Below are positions 34,445 through 64,000 of a stretch of DNA of 64,000 nucleotides, piece after piece. The stretch is from Lepidodermella squamata (taxonomy: Eukaryota > Animalia > Gastrotricha). The position numbers were made by a program, and so were the translations under genes. The DNA is taken from positions 1,178,001 to 1,242,000 of the forward strand of contig JBLDXI010000017.1 in assembly GCA_047495785.1 (NCBI GenBank), in the 5' to 3' direction. Numbering within the stretch: the first letter of the stretch is position 1; each line of letters begins with the position of its first letter. Under the pieces are notes generated by a model. It worked only from the letters and a program-made list of their open reading frames with translations. It did not search any database and was not told the origin of the DNA.

Positions 34445-35260
34445 ATGTATCAAAACTTGCCGGCCCAAAAAAGTCCCATTGTTTATGATAATGTCCCAAT
34501 GATGGGCAATCGTGCGGTTGGTCTTTGGCACGTTGCCAAGCGTCAAGCTGGAACTGTGGTCGACGAGGGCCAAGTCGGAGTTTCTCATCACATTTCCCAC
34601 ATTTTATGGGACTTGCACACAGCGAAGGCTTCAGATAACAGCCAACCACTAAAAAAATCGACATACGTCACGATTTTACCACCGACTGGCAACCCGACTA
34701 CAACGATATTCGTGCCGAAAGTCAGCCCTGTCGGAATTTTGCGGACAAAATCAAGCCGAGTTGCGCCTCAACAAGAAGTCCCGTTTGTTGTAGTCGCCCC
34801 GCCATTGAAATCGAAGTAGGTGATAGTAAAAAACGCAGTTTATTGACTCGAATTTATCGAATTTCCAGAGATGGCGAGGCTATTTACGAGGATTTGCCAA
34901 ACACTGAGCCCTTGATTGAGCTCTTACCTAGAATATCAATGGCGGTGCTAGCCAGAATAATGACAACAATCTCATTGCTATCCTGCTGCGTTTGCTTCAG
35001 CCTTCCAGCGGCATTTATGGCGTGGCTACCCGCAAAAAACAGGTACATTTTGAATTGTGAAAAGTCATTAAAAATTCACGAATTTTTCCAGGTGTGCGAA
35101 TTACAAATGTTCAATAACGCTGAGTTTCCTATCAATTATATTCAGCATTGGGTTCACTGTCATATTCGCGTATTTTTGGTTCGTTTTTGGGCCGATGATA
35201 AAAATTCAAAGACGCCAGATGGGCGAATATCGCACAGCCCCTGTTGCTAATTACACTTGA
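34445..35260 (+). CDS. Dispanin/CD225-like membrane protein, paralog a (divergent)
   Basis: Introns 34816-34868 and 35043-35091; LARIMTTISLLSCCVCFSLPAAFMAW...YKCSITLSFLSII two-helix domain. Confidence 0.7.
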
Positions 35261-36307: not shown

Positions 36308-36938
36308 TTATCCTGAATATCCGTTATAGTTATATCCGCCGGAATAGCTGCTGTAGCTATGAACAGGTGTCACAAGTCCAAATGTCATTATGATCAAAGA
36401 CACGACCATCCCAAAAGTTATAGCCGTAAGTGACAACGCGATGGAAACCTCATAGAATCTCTTAGGCTTGTATCTTTGGTAGGCCATGACAATAGCTGGT
36501 ATCGAAAACCACAGCTGCAGCCAACAGAACAGCGAAATTATTGACAGTGGTCTGGCTACAATAGCCTCAAGTGGTTCATTGATTTGATTTCGAACTACAA
36601 ACTGCTGCTGACCATTGTTGTCGATTGCTATAAATGCCATGGGCGTTACAATAGGCGTTGGTTGTGGCTGATGGTTACTGAAGGTCACATCAGTAAGAGT
36701 CAAACAGGTCAGAGATAACCTACCTCATCGTATTGAGCGAAAAGTTATCGTTCCCAGAAATAGATATCACAGCGGTATTCCCAGCAAGAATGGCAGGCTG
36801 CTGCTGTTGCATGTATGGCGCAGTTGCATTTGCATTGAAGGCAGCATTGTAAGCCGGCTGAGGATCATGTCTAGCGGCTGCAGAACTCGGTACCTGGGGA
36901 TAAATTCCGTTGTAACCAGGCGAGGCAGAAGCTGCCAT
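36308..36938 (-). CDS. Dispanin/CD225-like membrane protein, paralog c
   Basis: Two exons; P/Q-rich N-terminus, EPLEAIVARPLSIISLFCWLQLWFSIPAIVMAY...SIALSLTAITFG. Confidence 0.8.
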
Positions 36939-37186: not shown

Positions 37187-37988
37187 CTAAACTCGATTCG
37201 CCACAGCAGAAGCTGAGATCATCCATACTCCTGAGTCATTATAAGTTGGCGAAGTACCATAATAAGTGACATAATTTGTTTCAGGGTAATAGTAGCTCTT
37301 CGTCGGGTTATAATTCCCATAATTGTTGTAGTAATCCGAATAGTAGTAACCGTTACGGTAGTAGTAATTATCCGGCAACACCAGACCGCAAATCAGCATA
37401 ACCAGCGTTACCAACATTCCAAAAGCGATTGCCGTGATCGAAAGTGCAATCGAAGCGTTGTAGTATCGCTTCGACTTGTACTTCTGATAAGCCATCACAA
37501 TTGCTGGGATCGAAAACCAGAGTTGAAGCCAGCAGAACAATGAAATGATTGACAACGGCCGAGCTGCAGCTGCCTCCATAGGTTCCATTAGAGAGTTTCC
37601 AATCATGAATTGCTGCTGGTTGTTGGCCCCATTGACAGCGAATAAAGTTGTTGGAGTGACTACTGGCATCACCTGCTGGGGTCTGAAAATTTACAATAAG
37701 TCAACAATAGTCTCCCTTAATGATATGGAAATAGTATTACCTAGCATTGAAAGTGACCCCTTGAAGGGTTACAAATGAAGTTTGGTTGCTTGTATCGAAA
37801 GCGGGCAATGCAAAGACTGTGTTGCCTGATATCATTGGTTGCTGGGTCACCTGAGCTGTCGGGACATTGCAAACTATAACAGGCTGCTGTTCGGGTGTTG
37901 GGACAGCAGCAGCAGCTGATGAGGAGGAAGCTTGCTGGGCTACTTTTTGCATATCGGCATATTGAGGCGGAGGAGACGAGGACGCCAT
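37187..37988 (-). CDS. Dispanin/CD225-like membrane protein, paralog d
   Basis: Two exons; PPPQY N-terminus, same domain, Tyr-rich tail. An in-frame upstream ATG at 38174 is an alternative start. Confidence 0.8.
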
Positions 37989-38372: not shown

Positions 38373-39191
38373 TTAGCCTGTTGCTGAGACCGAATAGACA
38401 ACCGGCTTTGTTGTTGTAGATAGTAAAACACTCAGCAAAGTTGATCCGTTGTAACTCGAAGTTGAAGGAGGAAAAACCATGTCGTTGTCGTACAACGGCT
38501 GTCCATTCGAATCAAATCCTCCGTAAGGAACATTGTACATTGGCCTACGGTAGTAGTTGTCATTATAGTATCCGTGATAGCTGTAGTATTGAAAAGGCAT
38601 CACCATGCCGAAAATCATCATAATAAAAGCACCGATCATGCCAAGAACAATCGCCGTAATAGATAGTGCAATTGACGTTTTGTAAACAGATTTTGGCTTG
38701 TTCTTCTGGTAAGCGAACACAATTGCTGGTATGGAGAACCAAATTTGCAGGCAGCAGAACAATGAAATGATAGACAAAGGTTTAGCAACTGCTGCTTCGG
38801 CAAATTCGTGAACTTGAAATCCGGGAATATTGTTACCATAACCTCCCAGCAAAGGCTGGTTTGATGGAACAGGAATGTTGATGGTTGGAGTCATTATCGG
38901 ATAAAGCTGTTGCCCATTAGCATTGAACGAATAGCCCTGAGGAATAGCAAATGTCACGTAATTCGCGCCATTTTGGACTTGATGCTGTACATTTTGCACC
39001 GGTTGATTGCTATATGGCGTCGAACTCAGAACTCTGTTTGCTGCGGGCTGATTCGTTGCTGATAACTGACCCCCAGCAGCATCTTGATAACGCGGAGGGG
39101 GAGCTGAGTCGTTATTTGCAGCCTCGCTATTCTGAGGAGCAGGAGAAATCGCCGTTTTATTCATATTCTCTGATCCAGCAACTGAATCCAT
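38373..39191 (-). CDS. Dispanin/CD225-like membrane protein, paralog e (intronless)
   Basis: Single 272-aa ORF; PPPRY motif, KPLSIISLFCCLQIWFSIPAIVFAY...SIALSITAIVLG. Confidence 0.82.
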   Translation of the reverse strand: MDSVAGSENMNKTAISPAPQNSEAANNDSAPPPRYQDAAGGQLSATNQPAANRVLSSTPYSNQPVQNVQHQVQNGANYVTFAIPQGYSFNANGQQLYPIMTPTINIPVPSNQPLLGGYGNNIPGFQVHEFAEAAVAKPLSIISLFCCLQIWFSIPAIVFAYQKNKPKSVYKTSIALSITAIVLGMIGAFIMMIFGMVMPFQYYSYHGYYNDNYYRRPMYNVPYGGFDSNGQPLYDNDMVFPPSTSSYNGSTLLSVLLSTTTKPVVYSVSATG

Positions 39192-39850: not shown

Positions 39851-40940
39851 ATGCCTTTGATTTATCGATTTATAACATTCGTGGCAATAATTCAAGCGTA
39901 TGCTTTGCAGGGCATTTGATCATTTCAGCGCATGTTGCTTTTCACAGCTGTATTGCCGAACAAGGTTGCTACGGAACGGGAAGGAAACGTCATTGTTTCG
40001 ATGACAGATACTACACTTTACCAAGCGATCCCTACGGCGCGGTTGCTCCAACTTACTACCTATACCGACCGACCGCTGCCAATAATGACTCATTCATTGC
40101 CATTAACTCGAGCCTCGAACTGGATTTAAGGGCCAGTTCGCCCAATCAATTGGCAGTCGTTGTCCACGGATGGGGGAGTAGATTCGGGAAACGGCCCTGG
40201 CAAAAGACGATTATGCGTAACCTTCGTAAAATGAAGCCGGATATGGAGGTGTTGTTCCTAGATTGGGAACGGGGCGCATCAGAAGTATCTTCTAATACCT
40301 GGAGCATTGGTGTAGCGCTCGTCGACTTTTTGCTTGACAATCCTCAGTGGAACGCAAGTTCTAGCCACTGCATTGGCTTCAGCATGGGCGCAGGGCTCTG
40401 TGCATCCGCTGGGAGGTACATTCGAGAGTCCAGAACGAATCAAAGAGGATGGGGCCGATTAACTCTTCTCGACCCTGCTGGCTACGACCTAAGTAAATCC
40501 AACGGCGAGTTTGTCGACGTTTCCCACAGTAAGTTTAAGGCGGCATCCGCTAAGAAAAACTTCAAATCTTTTGTCTAGCATCGGATATAAGTTGGAACCG
40601 GTACTCGATAGGCCATGCTGACTATTTTGTCGGTGGAACTCGTGAACAGCCCGGTTGCGAGTACTCCGAAACAATGGATGTTGGAACCTGCTCACACGAA
40701 CGCGCCTGTCTTTACTTTCTCGAATCAGTCATACGCCCGCCAGGTATCGGAAATTGCACTTTCACAACTTTTTGCCCCTGTACCCAAGACGAATGGGATG
40801 AAGGCGGTTGTCGATCATGCAATACGAGCCAGATTCAAACGCTCGGCTACTGGGCGAACCCAAGCCGCCGAGGCATATTCTATGGACCTGTTGCTGAATT
40901 TGCGCCCTTTTGTATCCCGGTAAAATCTGATACTCAATAA
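39851..40940 (+). CDS. Secreted pancreatic-lipase-family enzyme, phospholipase A1-like
   Basis: Introns 39898-39947 and 40529-40578 give signal peptide MPLIYRFITFVAIIQACIA, VHGW, LDW, GFSMG (Ser), LDPAG (Asp), IGHADYF..G...QPGC, CSH.RA (His). Confidence 0.9.
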
Positions 40941-41846: not shown

Positions 41847-42290
41847 TCATTTATTAGGATAAATAATGGCAGGTATGATTATTCCAAATACAAATAGACC
41901 AATCGATGCTGTTGTTCCAATCGCTATCGCGACTGTCGATAGAATTATTGACTTTTTATAATTTGACCTAAAAGTTGAAAAAATTAATCAAGCGTCTATT
42001 TGATCTTTAATCACGCACCTTTTAGCACCTTTCCGGAATGCGAAAGCGATAGCTGGGACGGCAGTACATATTTGGAAGTAGCAGAAAAGGGCGACTAGAG
42101 CGAGAGGTCGAGAAATAGCTGCCTCTGGAGGTTCATTTTCAGCTACAGGTGACGCATTTTCCTCGATCAAAATAACGGCAACACCTTCGTTATTTCCGGT
42201 GGCCTTGAATGATACCACCGGCTCAGCTGATTTTTCACCTGATGCTAGTAATACTGCTGATTCTTCCACAGGCTGGGGATGCCTTTCCAT
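41847..42290 (-). CDS. Dispanin/CD225-like membrane protein, paralog h
   Basis: Two exons; EPPEAAISRPLALVALFCYFQICTAVPAIAFAF...YKKSIILSTVAIAIG. Confidence 0.78.
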
Positions 42291-42909: not shown

Positions 42910-43821
42910 TTAGATAGGGACATGTTTAAAGCCCTCAATCGTTTTCTTGTACAAATCAGAAACGCCATCAAAACGCACGGCATACGTGTATTTCACAACA
43001 GCGAAAATTTGATGCTGTTTAGTTTCCCAACCGCTAATTTGCCCGGTTTTACACGACGCCTCTAGACACCCAGCAAAGGAGCGGCATTTTTTCAAACACA
43101 GCCGCTCGTCTGAGATCGGGCGAGGTCTTACTTGTTTAACTGGTATCAGTTTTTGTTGAACAAAATTTTCCAGAATTTTTTCGAAAGAAATTTCTATAGG
43201 TTTTCGAAACAGTTGCTCAGGCACTACAACATCTTTTATCACAACGCTATTTAAAGAAGAATTAGTTATCAAATTTTCGAGACTAGTCATGTCTTCTTGA
43301 TAGGCCGGTATCAGCATTTCATTTAGACCATCGGCTCGACTTCGAATCGTGGTTTGATTGAGATCGGTTACGATATTTTTAACGAAAATTATTCGTTTGC
43401 CAAGTTCGGGATTATTCTGCTTGAAGCCGTCGACCACCTGTTGCAGGAAGGCATCGGCCAGGTCGGTGTAGACGAAAAGCAGGGCTCGAATCGGCGTGCC
43501 TTTGATAAAATCGAAGAATTTGACGTGAGTCTCGCGATCTGGGCCTTCGCTGTCGAAATAGCCGGGAATTTCGACGACGTAGTCGGCATTATTCCAAGCA
43601 CGGCGAGTCGTTACACGAGTGGTCACCTTGTAGTCACCGCTGCCTTCTGGGATTTCGAGCTGGCCGGCGGCTTTCAGGCGATTCGCGATGTAAGATTTGC
43701 CGACGCCTGTTTGGCCGAATAGAATTATGTAGCCGGTCTTTTTCTCGATGAATCTCGAATTCGCGAACATCAAAGATGTCAAGATTGACATCAGAAGAGG
43801 CAGCAAGGAATAGGAATTCAT
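42910..43821 (-). CDS. AIG1/GIMAP-like P-loop GTPase with predicted signal peptide, copy 1
   Basis: Intronless 303 aa; hydrophobic N-terminus; IILFGQTGVGKSYIANRL (G1), VTT (G2), VVEIPGYFDS (G3 variant), IRALLFV. Confidence 0.75.
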   Translation of the reverse strand: MNSYSLLPLLMSILTSLMFANSRFIEKKTGYIILFGQTGVGKSYIANRLKAAGQLEIPEGSGDYKVTTRVTTRRAWNNADYVVEIPGYFDSEGPDRETHVKFFDFIKGTPIRALLFVYTDLADAFLQQVVDGFKQNNPELGKRIIFVKNIVTDLNQTTIRSRADGLNEMLIPAYQEDMTSLENLITNSSLNSVVIKDVVVPEQLFRKPIEISFEKILENFVQQKLIPVKQVRPRPISDERLCLKKCRSFAGCLEASCKTGQISGWETKQHQIFAVVKYTYAVRFDGVSDLYKKTIEGFKHVPI

Positions 43822-44500
43822 CGTGAAAATTCAGTTCGGAACGAAAACCCTATAGAAAGTAAATAAAATTATATTATAGGTCAAGCAATCCAAAAAAATT
43901 GAGATTCCTTTGCTAAATTTTCCCATTTTTTTCCTAAAAATCTAACATCTTTAATTATCGAATTATTATTTATAAAATTCGATTTTATATTATCGAAATC
44001 GATAAACCGAAATCGATATCGGCTCTAAAGTAAGGCTCGTAAACTGACCCCTTACTGAATTCTCCTGAATCATTGGAAAAATCGCGTTCTGAAAGTGAAG
44101 ACCAGGCCTTATACTGAAAATAGCGGAGAATTTCAGGGTAATTTATTGATTTTTTGAACTAATCGTGATATTCCGGAAAATTCGTGTCTACAAAATTATT
44201 GGAAAATTACAATTTTGTTCAAGTTTGCGTTTAGTGTCAAGTCTTGAAATTTGGCTCCGCAGCAGGCAATTTTTTCGGCTAAAAGAAATTATGTTTTTTA
44301 CCTTGAATCTGATCGTCAGCAGACGAAACAAACCAGTTTAAAATTCTCTCTGCGAGCTTCTATAAAACCTATAATAAAAATATCAAAAATTATCGATTTT
44401 AATAGGTCGTCAGTTTTATTGTTTAGACCCGAGTATGGCAACATATCATTAAAATTATTTATAAATCAATAGGTAGCAGCGTTTTAGCATCATTTATCCG

Positions 44501-45451
44501 TCACTCGACCTTGGCGTCCTTAAACGCCACATGAGTTTTCGCATAGACATCGGCAACCCCATCAAATCGCGTCGCATACGTGTATTTAACTGTTTCAAAC
44601 ACGCGATATCGCCTCTGAACCGGTTCATCGGACGCAACTGTTTGCCATGTCGTCAAACACGTTTCATCGACCGGCTTTATCAGCAGTTGAATCACCTGGC
44701 TAGCTGCTTGAATAGCCTGCATCGCTGCCTGAGTATCACGGGTCGACCGCGTACATGATTTCACCGGAACAGCCTTTCGAACCAGCTCGATTTTAGTCTT
44801 CAGCTCTTCTTTCAGGAAAATTTCAGCGATTTCTTCACGAATAATTTGCGGAGGGTAGGGGAAAAGCGATATTGGAACCATTAGACGGCTAATTTGAACC
44901 GGCTTCAAGTCCGAAATAGCAGATCTTAGCACGGTAAAATTTTCCTGGTGCAGCTTGATGTTGACCTTCGAGAAGCCTTCGAACTTGGTCATTTCCGCCA
45001 GCTTAGGATTGAGGACTTTATTTTTCACTAAAATAATGTTCGGACCCAGTTCGCTGCTGTTGAAGGCTGTCAAAGCTTGTTGCATGAATTTATCGACCCG
45101 GCGCGTGAAAACGAACAGCAAAGCTCGGACATAATGATTTTTGAGAAAATCAATGAATTTGACCTGATTAACGCGATCCTGCTTTTCGGTATCGAAATAA
45201 CCCGGAAATTCGATCACCAGGCTATTGAAGTCCCAAGCCGAGGCGACTACAGCTTTTTTCGTGACAGATTTGTCGCTTGAACCTTCGATATAGGTCGGTT
45301 TAGAGGACATTGCAGCCAGGCGATTTGCGATGTAGCTTTTGCCAGTACCTGTTTGACCGAACAGCACGATGTAACTTTGCTGCCGCCGAACAAGATCCGA
45401 TGCGCCGGCTGAAGAGAAAATTGCCGCGCAACAAATTAAAATAATTTTCAT
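44501..45451 (-). CDS. AIG1/GIMAP-like P-loop GTPase with predicted signal peptide, copy 2
   Basis: Intronless 316 aa; MKIILICCAAIFSSAGA leader; GQTGTGKS, SVT, VIEFPGYFDT; shares C-terminal VKYTYAxRFDGVxDxY with copy 1. Confidence 0.75.
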   Translation of the reverse strand: MKIILICCAAIFSSAGASDLVRRQQSYIVLFGQTGTGKSYIANRLAAMSSKPTYIEGSSDKSVTKKAVVASAWDFNSLVIEFPGYFDTEKQDRVNQVKFIDFLKNHYVRALLFVFTRRVDKFMQQALTAFNSSELGPNIILVKNKVLNPKLAEMTKFEGFSKVNIKLHQENFTVLRSAISDLKPVQISRLMVPISLFPYPPQIIREEIAEIFLKEELKTKIELVRKAVPVKSCTRSTRDTQAAMQAIQAASQVIQLLIKPVDETCLTTWQTVASDEPVQRRYRVFETVKYTYATRFDGVADVYAKTHVAFKDAKVE

Positions 45452-45818: not shown

Positions 45819-46489
45819 TCAGTGCCGTGAATGGTCTAAGTAATAGGATGGAGGCCTGCGTAGAGGAAGAGCCAGTCCAGCGATTATTAACATGAATGCA
45901 ATTAGCATGCCAATAATTATGGCTGTCAAAGACAGCGCGATGGATTTCTTGTAATTCGCCCTCGGTTTCCCACGCCTGCAAGCCATGACCAACGCCGGAA
46001 TAGCGAACCAGCATTGGCACCAGCAGAAAAGGGAAATTATACCGAGAGCACGGGATAGCGGCGCCTCGGCTGGCTCGCTCGCCCCATTTTCAGGGTCGTC
46101 ATTTCCAGTAAGATTCCGAGCGAAATTTTGCATAGATATTGGAATTGCTATCGGAAACATTTGCTGGGACCTAAAAATAAAGATGAAAAATTTCCAAATT
46201 TTAAGGTGGACTAGAACTGTATTTACGATGCGTTGAATGAAAATCCTGAGGTTTGAGTTGTCAAGAGAGGCGCATTATCAATAGCCGGATTTGTTGTTGA
46301 GATGCCGAAATTTTGGAAACTCTGCAAGGGCTGTTGATTGAGCTGGTGAATCTGATGCGGGGTGGTGCTTGAAAGCTGGCGCAGTGGGACTATAGTGCCC
46401 GGTCGCGGCTGATAAGCCGGTGGGGCCAGGTTTGGTGCGCCTTGACCCGGTGGCTCGGTAGCTGCTGACTTGTCATCTCTCGAATCCAT
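45819..46489 (-). CDS. Dispanin/CD225-like membrane protein, paralog i
   Basis: Two exons; PPAY motif; EPAEAPLSRALGIISLFCWCQCWFAIPALVMAC...YKKSIALSLTAIIIG. Confidence 0.8.
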
Positions 46490-47005
46490 ATTTTTAACAA
46501 ATGAAACTCGCAAAGTAAAACTCGCCACTGGCCTATTCCTCTTTTTGTTACCTCTGCATTGTCTCAATAAAAGGCCGCATAAAGGCCCGTTTATCCACGT
46601 GCGCGTTAGTAATTTCGTTTATATTGCGTCTTACTCGTTTCTCAATTTTATTGTTTGGTTTTTTGCCCCTGCCGAGCATTGTTGCTGTGCTTGACTTAGT
46701 CATTAGCGAAACGTCGCTTTTCCCCATCAACATGAAATATTACCTGTGAGGGAACAATAAAAACAGACGATTCAAGAAATAGATACAGTACTATAATGAT
46801 GTATGCGATTGCTGATTTCCCATAAACAGATAAAAATACACCTCGTGATAATTACTGCGTACTTACATTCCGGTGGATTTATGGTATATGAAAATCTTAT
46901 GCTTACGCCTTTCTTTCCAAGTAAATTAGTACCCCGGTGTTTCTGATAATAACGAGCAATGCCGGCGCAGCTGAATAGCCCGCCCACGCGCTGATGTGCG
47001 TACCA

Positions 47006-47077
47006 TCCCTGATGGTCTAGTGGTTAGGATTCCGCGTTCTCACCGCGGCGGCCCGGGTTCGATTCCCGGTCAGGGAA
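47006..47077 (+). tRNA. tRNA-Glu(CTC): tRNA-Glu (CTC)
   Basis: 72-nt cloverleaf TCCCTGA...TCAGGGA-A, anticodon arm CCGCG-TTCTCAC-CGCGG, GGTTCGATTCC B-box, T5 terminator. Confidence 0.97.
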
Positions 47078-47148
47078 CATTTTTCGTTGAAGGGTGGCAC
47101 AATCTGATACTATTCATAGTAATTAATTCAAACTCAGATTGTATGTAA

Positions 47149-47220
47149 TCCTTGGTAGTATAGTGGTTAGTATCCCCGCCTGTCACGCGGGAGACCAGGG
47201 TTCGATTCCCTGCCAAGGAG
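47149..47220 (+). tRNA. tRNA-Asp(GTC): tRNA-Asp (GTC)
   Basis: 72-nt cloverleaf TCCTTGG...CCAAGGA-G, anticodon loop CTGTCAC, B-box, T-run terminators. Confidence 0.97.
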
Positions 47221-47348
47221 CATCATTTTTCGTTTTTTTTTATTTTTTATTTTTTATTTTTTTTATTGTCATGAATAACCTAATGATTTGACGGAAAAGA
47301 TGACTGCTAACTTGAGAAGGGCCTCGCAACTTTTTTGAGTTTTTAAGT

Positions 47349-49408: not shown

Positions 49409-50590
49409 TTAGCCTCTCAACAGAACATGCAATGGGTGGTGAGATACGGTCTTACTGGCTGCGGTCTTTTTAGGGCTCAGCGGCTCGAATGGTTGACCGA
49501 GGTAACGAGCGAAAACTTCGGAGAACAGAGATTTCAACTCTTCATTCTCTTGGTCCAGAAAGGATGTAGTTCGGATGGGTCGCGCAGTCGTAAGTGAGCT
49601 ATCCTGCAGCCTCCGCAACAGAGAATCAAAGTCCATATTCATTACGTCCGAGTAAGTCCTCAGTTTCCCAGTGCTGTTGGCCATCTTTTCACTTTTAAGA
49701 TCCACGTAACTCCTCCTGATCAACGAGTCCAGGTCTTTGAATCCAAGTGAGTAATTCTGACTTAATCCCATTTTCCGAAATGCGGACGAAAACCCGGCTG
49801 AAAAGCCATGGTAAAATTTGGCTTCGGCTACTACATCGCCCTCGGAGAAGCTTTGCAGAACATGATTAGCTATCAAAGGAATAATTGCCGCATTCGATAT
49901 AACTCGCCCTCCTCGTAAGAGCACGGACTGTGTCGTTGAAGGAATAATTGAGGCTGTTGTGCCGACGGTTGTTGGAACTTCCAGGAGACCTATCAAAAAC
50001 TGTTCTAATTCTGACACTTTTTCTGACGACGAATCACGTCCGGTTACATTTGTTATCGTTGATGTTGTTGATGAAAAATTCCCAGCCTTACTTATAGCAT
50101 GAAGCGTAATGGGTATCCTCGTGGTTCGATATGTTGAACGAACGTCTTTGGTCGATAACTTCTCTTGACGAGACGAGCGCGTCGAGGCTGAAGTGGGCGG
50201 TGGTTTTGTTGTGGATGTAGTAGTCGATTTGTAGGCTAGGATTGTTTTTAAAGTCGTCGGTTGTTCTGCTTTCTTAGGAATAGGGGTACTAATAATTCGA
50301 TTTGCATGACTGCTGAATGGCACAGATTGCTGTTGCAGTTTGTACCGTGCTGCTGCATTGCCGAAAAAATTGGCAAGTCTCAGCCGTTCTTCAATAAGAC
50401 GACTGAAGTCACTAGGGCTCGTTGCGTTGCTAGCAGTAATGGTCGGCATGAACTTCTGGAATAAGGCTTCAAAACTCAACGTAGTAGATCTGTTGATTTT
50501 CTTGTAATCACCAGAGACTTTCAGGCCGAGAGCTGTCTTCCCTCCCATCAAGACAGAGAATAATGCAAAAGCTTGAAGCAATCGAACCAT
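49409..50590 (-). CDS. Secreted Ser/Thr-rich (mucin-like) orphan protein
   Basis: Intronless 393 aa; signal-peptide-like MVRLLQAFALFSVLMGGKTALG; T/S-rich core; N-glycosylation sequons. Confidence 0.7.
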   Translation of the reverse strand: MVRLLQAFALFSVLMGGKTALGLKVSGDYKKINRSTTLSFEALFQKFMPTITASNATSPSDFSRLIEERLRLANFFGNAAARYKLQQQSVPFSSHANRIISTPIPKKAEQPTTLKTILAYKSTTTSTTKPPPTSASTRSSRQEKLSTKDVRSTYRTTRIPITLHAISKAGNFSSTTSTITNVTGRDSSSEKVSELEQFLIGLLEVPTTVGTTASIIPSTTQSVLLRGGRVISNAAIIPLIANHVLQSFSEGDVVAEAKFYHGFSAGFSSAFRKMGLSQNYSLGFKDLDSLIRRSYVDLKSEKMANSTGKLRTYSDVMNMDFDSLLRRLQDSSLTTARPIRTTSFLDQENEELKSLFSEVFARYLGQPFEPLSPKKTAASKTVSHHPLHVLLRG

Positions 50591-50776
50591 TGTAGCAAAA
50601 AATAGCTGTTAAGCAAGTTTTCGAGTGAGACTTTTGTCTTTGCGTGTGATTGTGAAACAGTCTTGTTGTAGCTTTATTTTTGTCATCTTACTGAAAATTT
50701 ATCACGCAACGTTTACATACAAAGCGTTTAAAGTGTTAAGAAAATGGCATGAATGGCGTGTCAAGCCACTTGTTTA

Positions 50777-51430
50777 TTAACGGCGCCCGAACATGTTGCC
50801 AATGCGACTCAGCACACTGCCAGACGACGAGTCTGACGAACCAGATGATCCAGATGATCCACTAGACCCGCCAAATAAGTTACCTAGGTTATCCAAAATA
50901 CTGCCGCTTTTCTTGCTGTCATCTGAAGACGAACCAGATGGTGGCTGCGCTGTCGAGCCACCTTGTCGTCGAAAGGCACCAATAATGGTATCGAGAGGCC
51001 CACTTCCTGACCCGCTGGATCTGCTAGAGCTGCTGCTGCTGTTACTGCTGAAAAAGCCAGTTATCTTCGAGATAACACTCCCGAACCCACTGTCAGATCC
51101 TGAGTCAGAGCCTGACCTCTGGCCGTTGTTATTGCCGTTATTGTTGCCCAATAAAGAACTTCCGATGTTGATGATATCTGCAACATCTAGATTCTGTCCA
51201 GCTCTTGGCGTTGCCTGGCCTGCTTCAGTCGTTGTACTCGTCGAGCCCTTAGTCGGTCTTCGGTTGTTAGGCGCTGCAGTAGTAGTAGTAGTTCTCTGCG
51301 TTTGTTTCGGCGGTGGGGTGGGTGGCCAATCGCCATCGATGTCGATGTCAGCGAAAGGATCAGACTGGGCTTGAGATGTTGCTAGCAAAAAGCTGCAAAG
51401 GGCAACCAACACAACAAGTAGGGAATGCAT
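50777..51430 (-). CDS. Secreted Gly/Ser-rich protein with short amphipathic helices
   Basis: 217 aa from ATG 51430; signal peptide; Thr-rich segment; helices separated by GS linkers; ends FGRR; TATA-like element about 70 nt upstream. Confidence 0.75.
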   Translation of the reverse strand: MHSLLVVLVALCSFLLATSQAQSDPFADIDIDGDWPPTPPPKQTQRTTTTTAAPNNRRPTKGSTSTTTEAGQATPRAGQNLDVADIINIGSSLLGNNNGNNNGQRSGSDSGSDSGFGSVISKITGFFSSNSSSSSSRSSGSGSGPLDTIIGAFRRQGGSTAQPPSGSSSDDSKKSGSILDNLGNLFGGSSGSSGSSGSSDSSSGSVLSRIGNMFGRR

Positions 51431-51685
51431 GTTGAATGTAATCACAAAAGACAATGAATGAAAAACTCAACGCCAACAGCTTTCAAGACTATTGCTTTTA
51501 TAAACCCCCTCAGTCGCTCTAACACGGAATGATGAGCACGTTTTCCTCCTGCCAAAAATGTGTAGACTTAAACTGTCTTTTATACAGTGTCCTACTCTAG
51601 GCTAATCATGGGTAGTAATTACGTCGTCAATCTTTAGAAAGTGGTGTTTACTTCAAGGTAAATTCTTTGCTTTCAACTCAGCATT

Positions 51686-54137
51686 TTACAGTTTGAAGAT
51701 TCCTTGAAAAAAGTTTGCTACTGGTTTAAAAAAATCGGTAATTGTTTGTAGCACTCCACCTCCTCCTCCTCCGCTATTTGAATCGTTGTTTCCTCTCGGC
51801 CCTGGAATGGGCCCACCGCCAAGAAGACTTGCTCCAACTTCGAAAACAGAAGCAGCCGTTTCGACTGCTTTCTGATCAACACCAGGTGCCTTCCCGATTT
51901 CGCGAATTCCCATTCCAGCCAAACCGGCCCCCGCTCCTACAGCGCCCATCGGCCCACCGGAAGCGATTGGAACAGCAACTGCGGCCACTCCACCTAAAAC
52001 CTGTTTAGCGGTATTCACAGCGTTATGATCTGCGCCGGGGATCGTTTTAATGGCCTCCATTCCCATATTTACACCCTGAATAGCCAAGCCAGAGATCAGA
52101 TTTGTTGGTAAGCCTCCTGCTGAACCAGATGACGATGATGAGGATCCCGATCCCCCAGAGGAGCCTCCACCCGTCATGCCACCTAACATTGGAAGGCCCA
52201 TCGATAGAGCTCCTCCGACTACGCTTTTCGCAGTGTCCACCGCTTTCGCATCGGCTCCTGGAATACCTTTCGCAGCGTCCAAGCCCATGTTAACACCTTG
52301 ACTCGCCATACCGGAAATCATTCCCATGGGCAATCCACCGGCTGCTGATGATCCATTAGAACCACTGGATGGCGAGCCGGATGATGCTCCGCCCATCATT
52401 CCCATAATCATAGGCATCCCCATTGATAAAGCGCCGCCAATTATTGGCTGAGCTGCATTTATAGCGGCGGGATCAGCTCCAGGAATACCTTTCGCCGCCT
52501 CCATGCCCATGTTAACACCTTGAATTGCCAGACCGGAGATCATTCCCATAGGCAACCCTCCAAGTGGGGAATTTGAAGAAGACGAATTACCAGCTGTATT
52601 TTTGGAGCCAGATGATTGTTGACCAGCCATCATCCCCATGACCATCGGCATCGCTGCACCTACTATCGGTTTCGCGGCATCGACTGCGGCGGGACTGGCC
52701 CCGGGAATGGTCTTCAATACTTCCATGCCTTTGTTGAGGAGTGCATCCAGGATGCCAGCTGAAGGGGCCGAAGTAACGGCTGCGCTTGGAAAGTCTGAAA
52801 ATAAAGCGAGATAATAGGGGAAATAATCGTTAAAACTTGTTAGACATACCGGTTACCAAGTCACCTTTGAAGGGAATTCCATGCACCAAATCGTCCGTAA
52901 AAGGTTTAAAAGTTGACGTCGCTGCCTGGGATGATTTGGATGTTTGAGAGTTGTCGTTAAAGTCGTCGAGATCAATGTCAAATGGGTCTTGCTCATCTTT
53001 CTTTACAGGCTGCCTTGCCGTATCTCGACGGCGTCGGCCCAAGTTGATAAAGGCCTCCAACAAAGATGATAGCGAATCTCCCACCACGCCCATGGTTCTG
53101 CTGTCAGCACCCGCCGCGGCTCCGATGCCCCGCGTAAGCCCACCTACGCCGCTCCCAATCGCTCGACCCATTCCGTTAGCTGATCCGTTTCCAGATCTTG
53201 TCTGAGGTGCATTCAAGCTTGAAACGCCCGCTTGAAAAACAGGAGCTAGAACACCTTGAACTTTATTCAGAGTTGCATTATCAACGCCTGGCATATCAGC
53301 GGCTCCTGCCAACGCCGACAAAGCGCTTACTCCTAACATTGTGGGAATTGAGCGCTCTAGGCTGCCATTTTTTAGACCGGAGCTTGCTGCTTGAAGGCCA
53401 CTAAGAGCAGCGCCACCCACGATTCCGATTCCGATCTGCGCCTGGTTAGCAACTGTTGCGTTGGACCCGTTGCTTTTACCGGCGACTTCCGCCAGAGTCA
53501 AGGCCGAATTAACAACAGATGGAATAACTGCCCCTGCCTGGTCTAATGGCCCGTTTTCGTCTGAGGATGGGATGTACTCCCCGTCGCGATTTCGTTCTCG
53601 TCGCTGGTTGACAGCATTCCCTCTCGCTGCATTTATCACGGATCCGACAGCATTACTGACTGAACCAGCAGCCCGTTGCGAATCTCTTGCGTTAATTGTT
53701 CCGTTTGAAACGCCAGCGACAAATGACCCGAAAACATTGCCGAGAAGACCAAACGCCCCCGAGTTGTCCGTATTTTGATTTGAGTCAGCATATTGGTCAT
53801 TTGAACCACTTGGGCCCATGTCGTAGTTCGCAAGACGAGGGTCTGAAAATCCTGAAGAAGGTTTTGGTGCCGGAGCAGGTTGTTGCCTTGGTACGGGATT
53901 GGATTTTTGTGTCGTAGTTTCTGGGATCAGAATTCGTGTTCGGCGAGCCCCCTTCGTTGTAGCAGGGGTTGTTACAACAAGCTGGCCTCCTTCAGAAGCA
54001 TCATTCGCCCCGTCAATTCCATTCGATCGACGCCGATTGTTAGCTGCAGCTCCAGCAGCAGGATTGTTATTTTGGGCATGTACAACTATTAAGGTGGAAA
54101 ATGCCACCAACGATATAATAACGAATTTTGACATCAT
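51686..54137 (-). CDS. Large secreted Gly/Ala/Met-rich repeat protein (~798 aa)
   Basis: Two ORFs joined in frame by a 55-nt GT-AG intron (52795-52849); signal peptide; polybasic sites RRRS and GRRRRD; ~70-aa repeats. Confidence 0.75.
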
Positions 54138-54373: not shown

Positions 54374-56443
54374 CTAGGAAGCTATCGGCTTCAGGACGTT
54401 GTGTCGCCGCCTTTCCGCGGATTTGTAGTATTGCAGCAATTGTTCGGTGACTGATGGAATTCTTTTGACTTTCGAAATGCGGAACTGCCCATCGCTATGC
54501 CGTTCAATCTTTGGCGCGCCAGCTTCTTTATTCCCATTAAGGAAATGTCCTACCGAAGTGCAAGCTGTTCCACCGCCTTGTCGTAGTGGAGGGAGTCTGA
54601 AAGGCGCAGTGAGGGTCTTCTTTTTATCGTTTTGAGGGGTTTCAGCCACTGCGTCGACGAGTACTTGATTATAATCATCACTCTCGATTTTGAAGCTGAT
54701 TGTTTTTGGTTTCCGTCGCTTGATCTTCAGACTATCGAGGCTTAGCGTATCACCACTGATACTCCCTGAACCCTGCGAATTCGGCGGAACGTTCAAATCG
54801 TACATTTTCGAGAATTTCGCTCTGAGCTTTGAAATGCCAGACGTAGTAAATCGAGGGGTGTTGAGCCGCGATTGCCGGACATCGGAACTATCGTTATCTT
54901 CTTCTTCTTCATCGGACAGAAAATGTCGAGTTTTGTAACCACCGTTTAGCAAGTTGGCCTGACGATTGACTTTTCTCAGCCCTCTTCCAGATGATACTTG
55001 GCTATGAATACCACGGATGTTTTGAAGTAACGCGGACGCTTCTTTCATAGCTTCGGTATGTCGCGACTCTAAATTTCCGTCGAATGTATAAGCCCTTGGG
55101 CCAAAAATAGGAGAATCAGAGCGCTGGGTGAATTTGACAGAAGCGTTGAAGGATGATATCGCTTGTCCATCAGGCCTACGATTGGCACTGTTCCAAAGTC
55201 GTGAGTTGGGGTCAGCATGTCGGTCGTAGATCTGCCTAGTTGGAGATATCGAATAATTGCTTCGTGAGGACATTCGTGAGGAAGAAATAACTACAGCAGC
55301 TATTTCCTGAACACTCCGATTGAGCCTGCGTCTAGTTTCATCCTCTTGAGACCCTTCCTTGCCATTCTCGCCACCTTCAGAATCTGAAAAGGTGGTTCTA
55401 GGGTAGGCTGCGCTGATTCCGTATGATGAAGATACTAAAATATCGTCATCGGAACCATCGAAGGACATGTCTGAGGATAAGAAGCTAGAGTAGCGGTTAT
55501 CGTTCGAAAGTCTAGCCTTGATTTTCCGCCGCATCTTCTTGTTGAGATACTGAATCACCGACCCACCATCTTCTTGGTCATCGCCATCTTTTTGGCTGAT
55601 CCAAGTATCGCCCTCTTCAAGACCTTCCGGTTTCACGGTACCGTCATTTGACGCGGCACCACCTTTAGCTCCCTTGAATCTAACCGTGTTCTTCCCCCTG
55701 CCCTTATTCTTGACTCGATTCAATTTTTCAGCGGCAATAGCTGCTCGTTTCGCCTCACGTCTCGCCGTTTTCGCCGCCTCGATTGGATCAGCAATTTGGC
55801 TACCACGGCCGAAACCAAGAAGCTTCCCACCTTTCCTGCTGCCGCCTTCCATTTTCGAACCAGGTGCTGGTGTGATAGCTGGCCCAGGGGTGGTTGCGTC
55901 GGTTTGAGGGCTTGAACTTTCTTCTGTTTCTTCCTCCTCTTCATCTTCATCTTCTTCATCAGTTTCTTGCTCAGTAGTTTCGGGCGAAATCTGTCGACTC
56001 GCAAGTTCTTCGACTTCCTCTTCTGGTAATTCTTCGATCTCAACGCGAGGAAGTTTTTTCGACCAAGCTGGGCCGTCTTCAAGCTCCATCTCTAGTATTT
56101 TTCGCTGCCTCTCCCGATATCTCTGTAACCGAAGTCGCTCCATGGTTTCTTGAAGCCCCGTACCCGAAACGCCAGGCCGGAAGTCTTTGTGCTTAAACGT
56201 GCTGGCATACCTGCCTCGATATGTCGAGTTGGGCAGGAACATGTCTGGAGCCAAGGGATTTTTGAGCTGTAGCAGCATCCGCTCGTAGGGTCGGCATTTG
56301 TGGCGCGGGAACATCCGCGCATAATCTGGATTGATTTGACTTGCCAATGGTGGCAATTCATCTGTCTCGAGATGCTCGGGAGAAGTTGGGCAATTCGCAT
56401 CTTTACACGCCTCAAAGCGACGCGTGTGAAGTACAGGGAACAT
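54374..56443 (-). CDS. Orphan, largely disordered 689-aa protein with N-terminal Cys/His module
   Basis: Long intronless ORF; acidic, basic and Ser-rich tracts; N-terminus similar to the gene at 62497. Confidence 0.75.
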   Translation of the reverse strand: MFPVLHTRRFEACKDANCPTSPEHLETDELPPLASQINPDYARMFPRHKCRPYERMLLQLKNPLAPDMFLPNSTYRGRYASTFKHKDFRPGVSGTGLQETMERLRLQRYRERQRKILEMELEDGPAWSKKLPRVEIEELPEEEVEELASRQISPETTEQETDEEDEDEEEEETEESSSPQTDATTPGPAITPAPGSKMEGGSRKGGKLLGFGRGSQIADPIEAAKTARREAKRAAIAAEKLNRVKNKGRGKNTVRFKGAKGGAASNDGTVKPEGLEEGDTWISQKDGDDQEDGGSVIQYLNKKMRRKIKARLSNDNRYSSFLSSDMSFDGSDDDILVSSSYGISAAYPRTTFSDSEGGENGKEGSQEDETRRRLNRSVQEIAAVVISSSRMSSRSNYSISPTRQIYDRHADPNSRLWNSANRRPDGQAISSFNASVKFTQRSDSPIFGPRAYTFDGNLESRHTEAMKEASALLQNIRGIHSQVSSGRGLRKVNRQANLLNGGYKTRHFLSDEEEEDNDSSDVRQSRLNTPRFTTSGISKLRAKFSKMYDLNVPPNSQGSGSISGDTLSLDSLKIKRRKPKTISFKIESDDYNQVLVDAVAETPQNDKKKTLTAPFRLPPLRQGGGTACTSVGHFLNGNKEAGAPKIERHSDGQFRISKVKRIPSVTEQLLQYYKSAERRRHNVLKPIAS

Positions 56444-62496: not shown

Positions 62497-64000
62497 ATGA
62501 AGACTGTCAATTTTTCCGAGCCAAATTCTGCTCCTTGGAAGTACTCCAAGTTCGACGAATGCAAGGAAGCTGAATGCGCCGTAGATGTGCTAGCTCCGCC
62601 GCCCTATTCCCGACCTCCCGAAGACATCTGGCCAATGCATCGCTGTTCGGTACTTGATAAGGTCCTCCTCGATGACGGGACAAAATTCAAAAGCGCCCCG
62701 GATATGTTGTTACCAAATTCCACCTACCGTAGCATGGTAACTACACGGAAGATCAAAAGTGCCTTCCCTACTACAACAAACGCTGAAGAAATCAAAGTTG
62801 ACACTCAGAAGGCCGAGAAAATAATCAAGGTCCCTCAGCATCCCATTCAAATGGTTCCAACCCCGCGTCAACACCACGATTTGCGGTGTCGGAAGATGAA
62901 AATGGAAGCCGAGGCTAGAATGTCGATGTTGTCGAAAAGCGACACAGTCTGTCCGAGTTCTGGCTTAACTGGCGGACGGGTTAACCTTGCGGAAAAGCCA
63001 ACCATCTGTGACCATCATCCAGATTCTAAGAAATGCTGGGCCAGAGTTCGACTACGTCAAAGTACGTCATGCGAGCCGATAAAACGGTCTATGCCTGCTT
63101 CAAAGCCCAAGATTCAAGTGACATCGTCTGAGTTGGCTGCTATAGACGATGACTATCTAATCACTAGCAAGGGTTACTTTGACGATGACGACCGTAAACT
63201 GTTACGCTTGAATGGAAGCCCTCCTCCGCCATCTCCAGAGAGTCAATTAACGAAGTTAGCGAAAACTGAAAACAAAACAGTTAGTAATCGTTCGAAAAGA
63301 ATCCCACCTAAAGTGGTTACCTACCCTACTCCGAACAAATCTCTCATTAAAGAGTCTAATGAGAAGTCCTTTTTTGTCGGATGTAGCAAAGAAAATTTGG
63401 ATAAAGATGACTTTGAAGATGATTCAATCCAATACTCAGCGTCTCCAAGTATCGGAAGCCCTGCAGTGTTCGATCCATCCCCAGTTTCTCCGAGGAAGAA
63501 AGGCCCTGAGCCTGAGAATCTTGTCCATCCATCCGTGAAGAAACTGGCAACAGGACCGATGAATAGAAGCCAGTCTGTTCCGTCAACTTACACCATGATC
63601 ACTCTCACGCCATCAGCAGTGCCACCACCAAACAGCGTCGCGCCGCCCCCATCTGCGTTTTTAGGATCCTTGGATAACTTGACATCCTCCGCATTGGTAA
63701 CAAGGGCCGTACGCCATGAAAGTGAGCCCGCCATTAAAAATGCAGTGACCGAACTGCCGACGCCAGTAGAGGAAGCTACCGTCGCTGGCCATTCAGGTTT
63801 GAGTTGCTTATTTCTTTTCGCCTCTGTAGTATTTAACTAGAACTGCATGATTTTGAGCTTGAATGAAATCCGGATGAATGATGAATGATGCTTTTTATGA
63901 TAGATGTCAAGAAGTGGGAAAGTCGACGAATTACTGATTCTGCGAAACGGAAACTTCTCGAAAACATTGCTGCAACTCAACAGAACGCTGCTGAGAGGAA
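62497..64000 (+). CDS. Orphan Pro/Ser/Lys-rich protein with N-terminal Cys/His module, 3'-truncated
   Basis: 447-aa ORF; probable intron 63798-63903, then frame open to window end. Confidence 0.7.

Follow-up and report, generated by a model that had tools for sequence, protein, structure and literature searches.

Two adjacent genes of the gastrotrich Lepidodermella squamata, here called A and B, encode AIG1/GIMAP-type GTPases that begin with a short hydrophobic leader, and such a leader was found in none of their relatives with an intact N-terminus among the matches of a profile search. On balance, we lean towards a reading in which the two proteins would enter the secretory pathway, have the leader cleaved off, and carry a long β-hairpin that is stapled by disulfides. 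The genes lie in a stretch of 64,000 nucleotides (the window) from contig JBLDXI010000017.1 of GenBank assembly GCA_047495785.1 (positions 1,178,001 to 1,242,000), and attention was drawn to them by an earlier note made from the sequence alone. Links of AIG1/GIMAP GTPases to immunity are known from plants, vertebrates, molluscs, and corals, and the mechanism of these proteins is poorly understood. To our knowledge, all members that have been studied work on the cytosolic face of membranes.

Gene integrity and relatives

The coordinates, strand, and motifs that the earlier note had given for both open reading frames (ORFs) were re-checked by translation, and all of them hold (Table 1). The two proteins are paralogues with 37% identity over their whole length (E 8e-57). 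They had been described as intronless, which holds for the coding region of each gene; 18 nt 5' of the ATG of B, an acceptor-like ttcatttcag may mark an intron in the 5' untranslated region of this gene. An in-frame stop lies just 5' of the ATG in both genes, and an AATAAA is present about 25 nt past the stop of A and about 95 nt past that of B. The first methionine of B is the sole one ahead of the P-loop, so translation of the G domain implies translation of the leader. In A, a leaderless form could start at the internal Met18. The pair sits in a contig with ordinary animal-type genes, such as sulfotransferases, a GPCR-like ORF, γ-glutamyltranspeptidase, and a lipase (read by eye), and is therefore not contamination.

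A HMMER profile search over 1.84 billion representatives returned 111 matches. About 17 clusters (P0001–P0017) share the whole architecture of A and B, which consists of a TRAFAC G domain of ~170 residues, an LFK-x-P linker, and a C-terminal domain of ~120 residues, and which ends in the signature Y-x-x-[AE]-RFDG-x-x-x-Y-x-K. These relatives are mostly 276–300 aa long where complete. The tail end VKYTYA-x-RFDGV, which had been pointed out earlier, is indeed present in both A and B. A word-index protein search with B gave nothing, and the relatives surfaced only by the full profile search. Judged from the second gene pair in the genome and from full-length relatives with E values down to 1e-53, the similarity of A and B to their relatives is far beyond chance.

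The labelled members of this subfamily are microbial eukaryotes, namely the chrysophyte Chlorochromonas danica and one MMETSP transcript, and most matches carry no taxon label. Other members lie on metagenomic contigs with eukaryotic genes (formin, RabGAP, SNARE, and CPSF73). One of them, P0011 (1090–2463 of its metagenome contig), is fused to an N-terminal TIR_2 domain on a protist-like contig with adjoining formin and RabGAP genes, and this fusion hints at a role in conflict or immunity. Another, P0009, is located on a 310-kb metagenome scaffold that is very gene-dense, with RING, ankyrin, and AAA genes present and most genes without a Pfam match; the scaffold may come from a giant virus or from a protist with a compact genome. 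A viral assignment of this scaffold was considered and dropped: its AAA ATPase matches only generic p97/Cdc48-type ATPases, and one large ORF has no match in the PDB. An IMG/VR scan with P0009 for a link to giant viruses found no relative.

The N-terminal leader

The leader is real and unusual, as it is present in both ORFs and in no relative with an intact N-terminus. All four genes of this type in the L. squamata genome (A and B, and C and D of a second pair, described below) begin with a hydrophobic leader of ~18–23 residues, in D assuming a start at the internal Met17. They place 22–42 residues ahead of strand β1 of the G domain, with best 10-residue hydropathy values of 2.2–3.3; three secreted-looking ORFs in the window, used for comparison, score 2.2–3.1. 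The relatives have 1–12 residues ahead of β1, except for one non-hydrophobic extension and a TIR fusion. The leader was thus found only in the four genes of the gastrotrich genome, which form two tandem pairs and one clade.

Signal peptides conserve character rather than sequence. The same is seen in the four leaders, which keep their character and not their sequence, and each of them offers an acceptable site under the −3/−1 rule by hand reading. In A, the candidate site is A-N-S↓R, with small residues at −3 and −1. A dibasic pair had been noticed earlier just before G1; it is found between the leader and β1, as KK in A and RR in B.

A genome-wide survey of 91 AIG genes in the snail Biomphalaria reported a signal peptide in none of them (PMC7053062). 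Full-text literature searches turned up no account of an AIG1/GIMAP protein with a signal peptide.

The C-terminal hairpin and its cysteines

The C-terminal domain was modelled for B with AlphaFold on an alignment of 18 sequences (pLDDT 84). In this model, the first two of three long β-strands at 202–314 form one very long β-hairpin, and the third spans residues 300–314, which agrees with the β-like tail proposed in the earlier note. The resulting β-ribbon is ~100 Å long, as estimated by strand length, and its distal part is polar, with many Thr, Lys, and Glu residues. A first AlphaFold run on three sequences had given a helical tail (pLDDT 52) and was superseded by this model. Foldseek against the PDB, VIA-align wide, ESM Atlas, and BFVD gave matches confined to the G domain, and an Atlas feature search with residues 190–316 gave no usable match. 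It had also been claimed that a C-terminal transmembrane anchor is missing; the mean hydropathy of the last 25 residues is about −0.2, and beyond residue 25 the 19-residue windows stay at or below 1.02.

The only cysteines of A are residues 242, 246, 252, and 257, and mature B has only Cys233 and Cys265. From the strand boundaries of the model, the two cysteines of B are predicted to lie opposite one another, at the base of the tip loop. The sister copies show the same arrangements, the A-type in D and the B-type in C (by eye), and the cysteines of the relatives are scattered and unpaired. In the relatives, the hairpin tip is a loop of W, G, and hydrophobic residues followed by a Lys cluster, from which we infer that it may serve as a membrane-interface loop. 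One N-glycosylation sequon (N155 in A) is shared by A and D and another (N131 in B) by B and C, which is weak evidence. Together, the leader, the paired tip cysteines, and the sequons fit an adaptation to the secretory pathway, as far as sequence features can tell.

The G domain and membership in the AIG1/GIMAP superfamily

The G domain retains most of the elements of nucleotide binding. The G1 P-loop GxxxxGK[ST] is intact (GQTGVGKS in A and GQTGTGKS in B), and the switch-I Thr of G2 is kept, with KSVTKK in B aligning with KSITKK of GIMAP4 and YKVTTR in A. The earlier note had reported ExPG in place of DxxG in G3, and the sequences are indeed EIPG in A and EFPG in B, departing from the consensus with the acidic character retained. 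This change from Asp to Glu is derived, as most relatives keep D-x-PG, and the Glu preserves the Walker-B acid. Since the P-loop, the switch-I Thr, and the Walker-B acid are all kept, nucleotide is probably still bound.

The G4 consensus (N/T)(K/R)xD is replaced by IIFVKNI/VKNIVTD in A and IILVKNK/VKNKVLN in B. A degenerate G4 had been listed as a feature of the pair; it is present in both proteins, characterises the subfamily as a whole, and does not set the pair apart. In the subfamily alignment, no column other than the G4 Asn is invariant, and most members lack the Asp or have it displaced. Relaxed base specificity is known from YchF-type ATPases, and by analogy the missing G4 Asp may relax base specificity here as well.

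Assignment to the AIG1/GIMAP type, as originally proposed, is upheld by the best sequence matches in the PDB, which are GIMAPs, and by precomputed Pfam AIG1 matches in the two relatives P0009 and P0011. B alone matches human GIMAP4 (3lxx) with E 6e-7 over residues 21–95, and the family profile retrieves GIMAP4, 7, 5, 2, and 1 first (4.6e-10 to 1e-2), then GBPs, Toc34, and septin. Protein-language features (Atlas) of the protein point to AIG1/MMR_HSR1 clusters, and structural matches place the G domain in the TRAFAC fold, with SRP receptor beta (SR-beta) among them. An NCBIfam search yielded only P-loop noise. Sequence similarity to AIG1-domain proteins is limited to G1–G3. A and B are thus genuine members of the AIG1/GIMAP superfamily, within a distinct, unnamed, and rare subfamily.

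Paralogues and duplication history

A search for paralogues in the animal's own genome (121.2 Mb in 151 contigs) found exactly four such genes, the pair in the window and a second tandem pair, C (B-like) and D (A-like), on contig C38; no leaderless member is present in this genome. Single exons were used to compare the C38 paralogues, and intron boundaries were set by eye. C has three small predicted introns with GT-AG ends (63, 54, and 76 nt), and the first of them interrupts the G3 motif. In D, a single interruption of ~67 nt splits a codon of the cysteine clamp, and the frame is restored only with a GC-AG reading. A stretch at C112:38776-41036 was considered as a third pair and rejected; it is 100% identical to the sister pair on C38 over ~5 kb and most probably represents an assembly duplicate (a haplotig or an amplification artefact).

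In the tree, a branch with support of 94/94 separates the four genes from the others, and the groupings (A,D) and (B,C) both have support of 100. This topology means that one gene was first duplicated in tandem, giving an A-type and a B-type gene, and that the pair was then copied by a segmental duplication. The leader and the cysteine clamps are older than both duplications. A gain of introns in one pair or a loss in the other explains the difference between them. Synonymous divergence (dS) between the paralogues is saturated, and the ratio of non-synonymous to synonymous divergence (dN/dS) is not computable for A and D. For B and C, dN/dS is ~0.25–0.33, and a second DNA run from the same or a close strain shows five synonymous and two non-synonymous differences in B. 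These values indicate purifying selection on the pair.

Proposed route and alternative explanations

The relatives start right at β1 and are presumably cytosolic. In the mechanism that we propose, an ancestor of the gastrotrich clade would have gained a short N-terminal leader resembling a signal peptide, through which the proteins would enter the endoplasmic reticulum (ER) and lose the leader. One disulfide in the B-type and two in the A-type protein would form and staple the hairpin tip. No KDEL signal, further transmembrane segment, or glycosylphosphatidylinositol-type tail was found in A or B, and for this reason the proteins would be expected to travel on beyond the ER. The earlier note had read A and B as secreted or lumenal GTPase-fold proteins; the leader on which this reading was built is real and the cysteine pattern fits it, and secretion itself stands as a prediction.

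Several points weigh against this route. The best 19-residue hydropathy window of B reaches 2.03, which is within the transmembrane range. A carries no positive charge before its hydrophobic core and R/KK after it, a pattern that could favour a cytosolic G domain by the positive-inside rule. The cleavage sites are hand-read, the tip of the hairpin (236–262) is modelled with low confidence, and the C-terminal fold was compared only as part of the whole protein. The four cysteines of A could bind a metal instead of forming disulfides. We know of no luminal or extracellular TRAFAC GTPase, nor of GTP being available there. In addition, the only run that is possibly RNA (its kind is guessed, and it consists of contigs, which drop rare transcripts) gave no coverage of A or B.

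A rather unlikely alternative is that the leader is an uncleaved membrane anchor that tethers a cytosolic G domain to the ER or another membrane. Such proteins would be a mirror image of the tail-anchored GIMAPs and would resemble the N-terminally anchored SR-beta, and their cysteines would be metal-binding or non-structural. The hydropathy window of B and the charge pattern of A speak for an anchor, as do the basic residues that follow the core in A, B, and C (KK, RR, and RKR) and the presence of SR-beta among the structural matches; GTP is available in the cytosol, where all AIG1/GIMAP proteins known to us act. However, the cores span only 10–14 residues, after which come small-residue c-regions that offer acceptable −3/−1 sites (A-G-A↓S in B), and the best 19-residue window of A is 1.39, below the usual transmembrane threshold. 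Mature A and B also have no cysteine outside the symmetric tip pairs, a pattern typical of secreted proteins. It is very improbable that the window pair consists of retroposed or silent copies without present function, which the absence of coding-region introns and of coverage in the possibly-RNA run would allow. Both ORFs are intact despite saturated dS, the divergence between B and C and the differences of B in the second DNA run bear the mark of constraint, the nucleotide-binding motifs are all preserved, and a separate poly(A) signal accompanies each gene. Retroposition, which the earlier note had raised, finds no support, because it is implausible that two retrocopies would settle next to each other with the order and orientation of an intron-bearing sister pair, and the tree fits tandem and segmental duplication.

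The origin of the genes in the animal lineage is a separate matter. Horizontal transfer of the subfamily from a microbial eukaryote or its virus, followed by duplication, gain of the leader, and introns in one pair, is a possible but tentative account. Every relative that could be placed is a protist or protist-like (Chlorochromonas danica, the MMETSP transcript, and the contigs with formin, RabGAP, SNARE, or CPSF73), the four genes form one clade, the genome has only four copies with no leaderless member, and the coding regions of the window pair are free of introns. Against this, most matches are unlabelled and may include other animals, the backbone of the tree is unresolved with no donor identified, and the genes lie among ordinary animal genes. 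Any transfer would have to be old, given the saturated dS between the paralogues. Vertical descent accompanied by many losses is an equally good fit, and a patchy distribution of AIG1 families is described in two published accounts (PMC8857920, PMC7053062).

Comparison with known systems

GIMAP/AIG1 proteins (IAN; PF04548; human GIMAP2, 4, 5, and 7) are the best sequence matches of A and B among solved structures and are among the best structural ones. The TRAFAC G domains align residue by residue over G1, the switch-I SxTK, and hhh-[D/E]-x-PG-x-x-D. Tandem arrays and lineage-specific expansion are typical of the AIG family (PMC7053062), and the pair shows the tandem layout. In contrast to GIMAPs, A and B have Glu for the G3 Asp and no specificity Asp in G4, and their C-terminal extension is a long β-hairpin, whereas that of GIMAPs consists of amphipathic helices or a coiled coil. 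Moreover, a subset of GIMAPs has a C-terminal membrane anchor, whereas A and B have none and bear a signal-peptide-like leader at the other end. The leaderless relatives P0001–P0017 share with A and B the G domain, the β-hairpin domain, Y-x-x-RFDG, the G4 Asn, LFK-x-P, and a similar length; they differ in that most have the G3 Asp, the tip is W/G/hydrophobic with a Lys cluster, and there are no paired cysteines.

Septin-like TRAFAC GTPases, which include Toc34/Toc159, septins, GBPs, and IRGs, act on membranes as a class. They are weaker profile and fold matches, to the G domain of A and B only, and all of them are cytosolic with other accessory domains. Tachyplesin and protegrin are disulfide-stapled β-hairpin antimicrobial peptides, and the tip of A (C-x3-C-x5-C-x4-C) would allow a two-rung disulfide ladder like theirs. 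This likeness is one of pattern and not of homology, as the hairpin of A is the tip of a 300-aa protein. Intracellular bacteria deliver effectors with GIMAP-like G domains, and some viruses also encode such domains (PMC3417536), so that use of the domain outside the producer cell has a precedent, of a different kind.

The most likely role of A and B, that of membrane-directed defence or effector proteins, is speculative and is suggested by AIG1/GIMAP biology and the TIR fusion, that is, by family associations. A bolder proposal, which we regard as decidedly unlikely, is that in this animal lineage a cytosolic, membrane-targeting AIG1-type GTPase has turned into a secreted one, the first TRAFAC GTPase adapted to the secretory pathway or to the extracellular space. 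In it, the G domain, possibly with relaxed base specificity, would drive or gate the hairpin, and the disulfide-stapled, exchangeable tip of the hairpin would attack or bind the membranes of microbes or prey. A clade with all nucleotide-binding residues, a secretion leader, and tip-clamping cysteine pairs would raise the question of how, if at all, a G domain functions where conditions are oxidising and GTP is scarce. Further questions are what a β-ribbon of this length does on a GTPase and how a cytosolic defence protein becomes re-targeted. If the leader is only a membrane anchor, the finding shrinks to another membrane-tethered AIG1 variant. A compact two-domain subfamily, with one TIR-fused member and so far without a name or structure, has been defined.

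Genomic neighbourhood

The features of the pair, the sister pair, and an array of small neighbouring ORFs are collected in Table 1.

Table 1. Positions of the genes, protein segments, and neighbouring ORFs (window coordinates unless a contig is given)
Feature	Position	Strand	Description
Gene A	42910..43821	(-)	complete 303-aa ORF: leader, AIG1-like G domain, C-terminal β-hairpin domain
A leader, residues 1-22	43756..43821	(-)	MNSYS, 14-residue hydrophobic core, then A-N-S; likely cleavage after S22 (−3/−1 rule, by hand)
A G domain, ~residues 28-199	43225..43740	(-)	G1 43693-43716; ExPG 43561-43572; G4-like VKNI 43372-43392
A hairpin-tip cysteine clamp C-x3-C-x5-C-x4-C	43051..43098	(-)	sole four cysteines of A
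A RFDG motif	42964..42975	(-)	C-terminal signature of the family
Gene B	44501..45451	(-)	complete 316-aa ORF, architecture as gene A
B leader, residues 1-18	45398..45451	(-)	MK, 10-residue hydrophobic core, then SSAGAS; A-G-A↓S as canonical AXA motif (by hand)
B G domain, residues 24-195	44867..45382	(-)	G1 45335-45358; ExPG 45200-45211; G4-like VKNK 45017-45037
B long β-hairpin	44570..44848	(-)	strands 202-235 and 263-294, tip loop 236-262, flanked by Cys233 (44753-44755) and Cys265 (44657-44659)
B RFDG motif and third strand, residues 295-316	44504..44569	(-)	
Sister pair C (B-like), D (A-like)	C38:607254-609514	(-)	small introns, by eye
CD225/IFITM-like ORFs	34843-35250, 36308-36703, 37187-37672, 38373-39191, 41988-42290, 45819-46160	(+), (-), (-), (-), (-), (-)	

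Six small ORFs in the window have a CD225/IFITM-like motif (ARPLSIISLFCW..IPA..A..), and two of them flank the GTPase pair. The possibly-RNA run covers these two flanking ORFs (41988-42290 and 45819-46160) and 46223-46567 at 100% identity. A functional link between the GTPases and these neighbours was considered and rejected; no such ORF lies within 16 kb around the sister pair on C38, so the association is not a conserved one. A lipase-like ORF (39916-40578, (+)) with a GFSMGAG serine motif of the pancreatic-lipase/PLA1 type (by eye) is located between the IFITM-like array and the pair of GTPases. Just beyond the IFITM-like ORFs upstream of B, a tRNA-Glu(CTC) at 47006-47078 (+) and a tRNA-Asp(GTC) at 47149-47221 (+) are 70 nt apart.

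Farther along the window, 49409-54137 (-) holds a run of ORFs with signal-peptide-like starts and low-complexity bodies rich in Gly, Ser, Ala, and Met, and in the ORF at 51686-52726 a unit IPGA-D/S..A..A is repeated about five times. Two long ORFs, 54374-56443 (-) and 62497-63840 (+), share an N-terminal ..CK[DE]A.C.. followed by ..PDM.LPNSTYR.., and look like paralogues of one unknown family.

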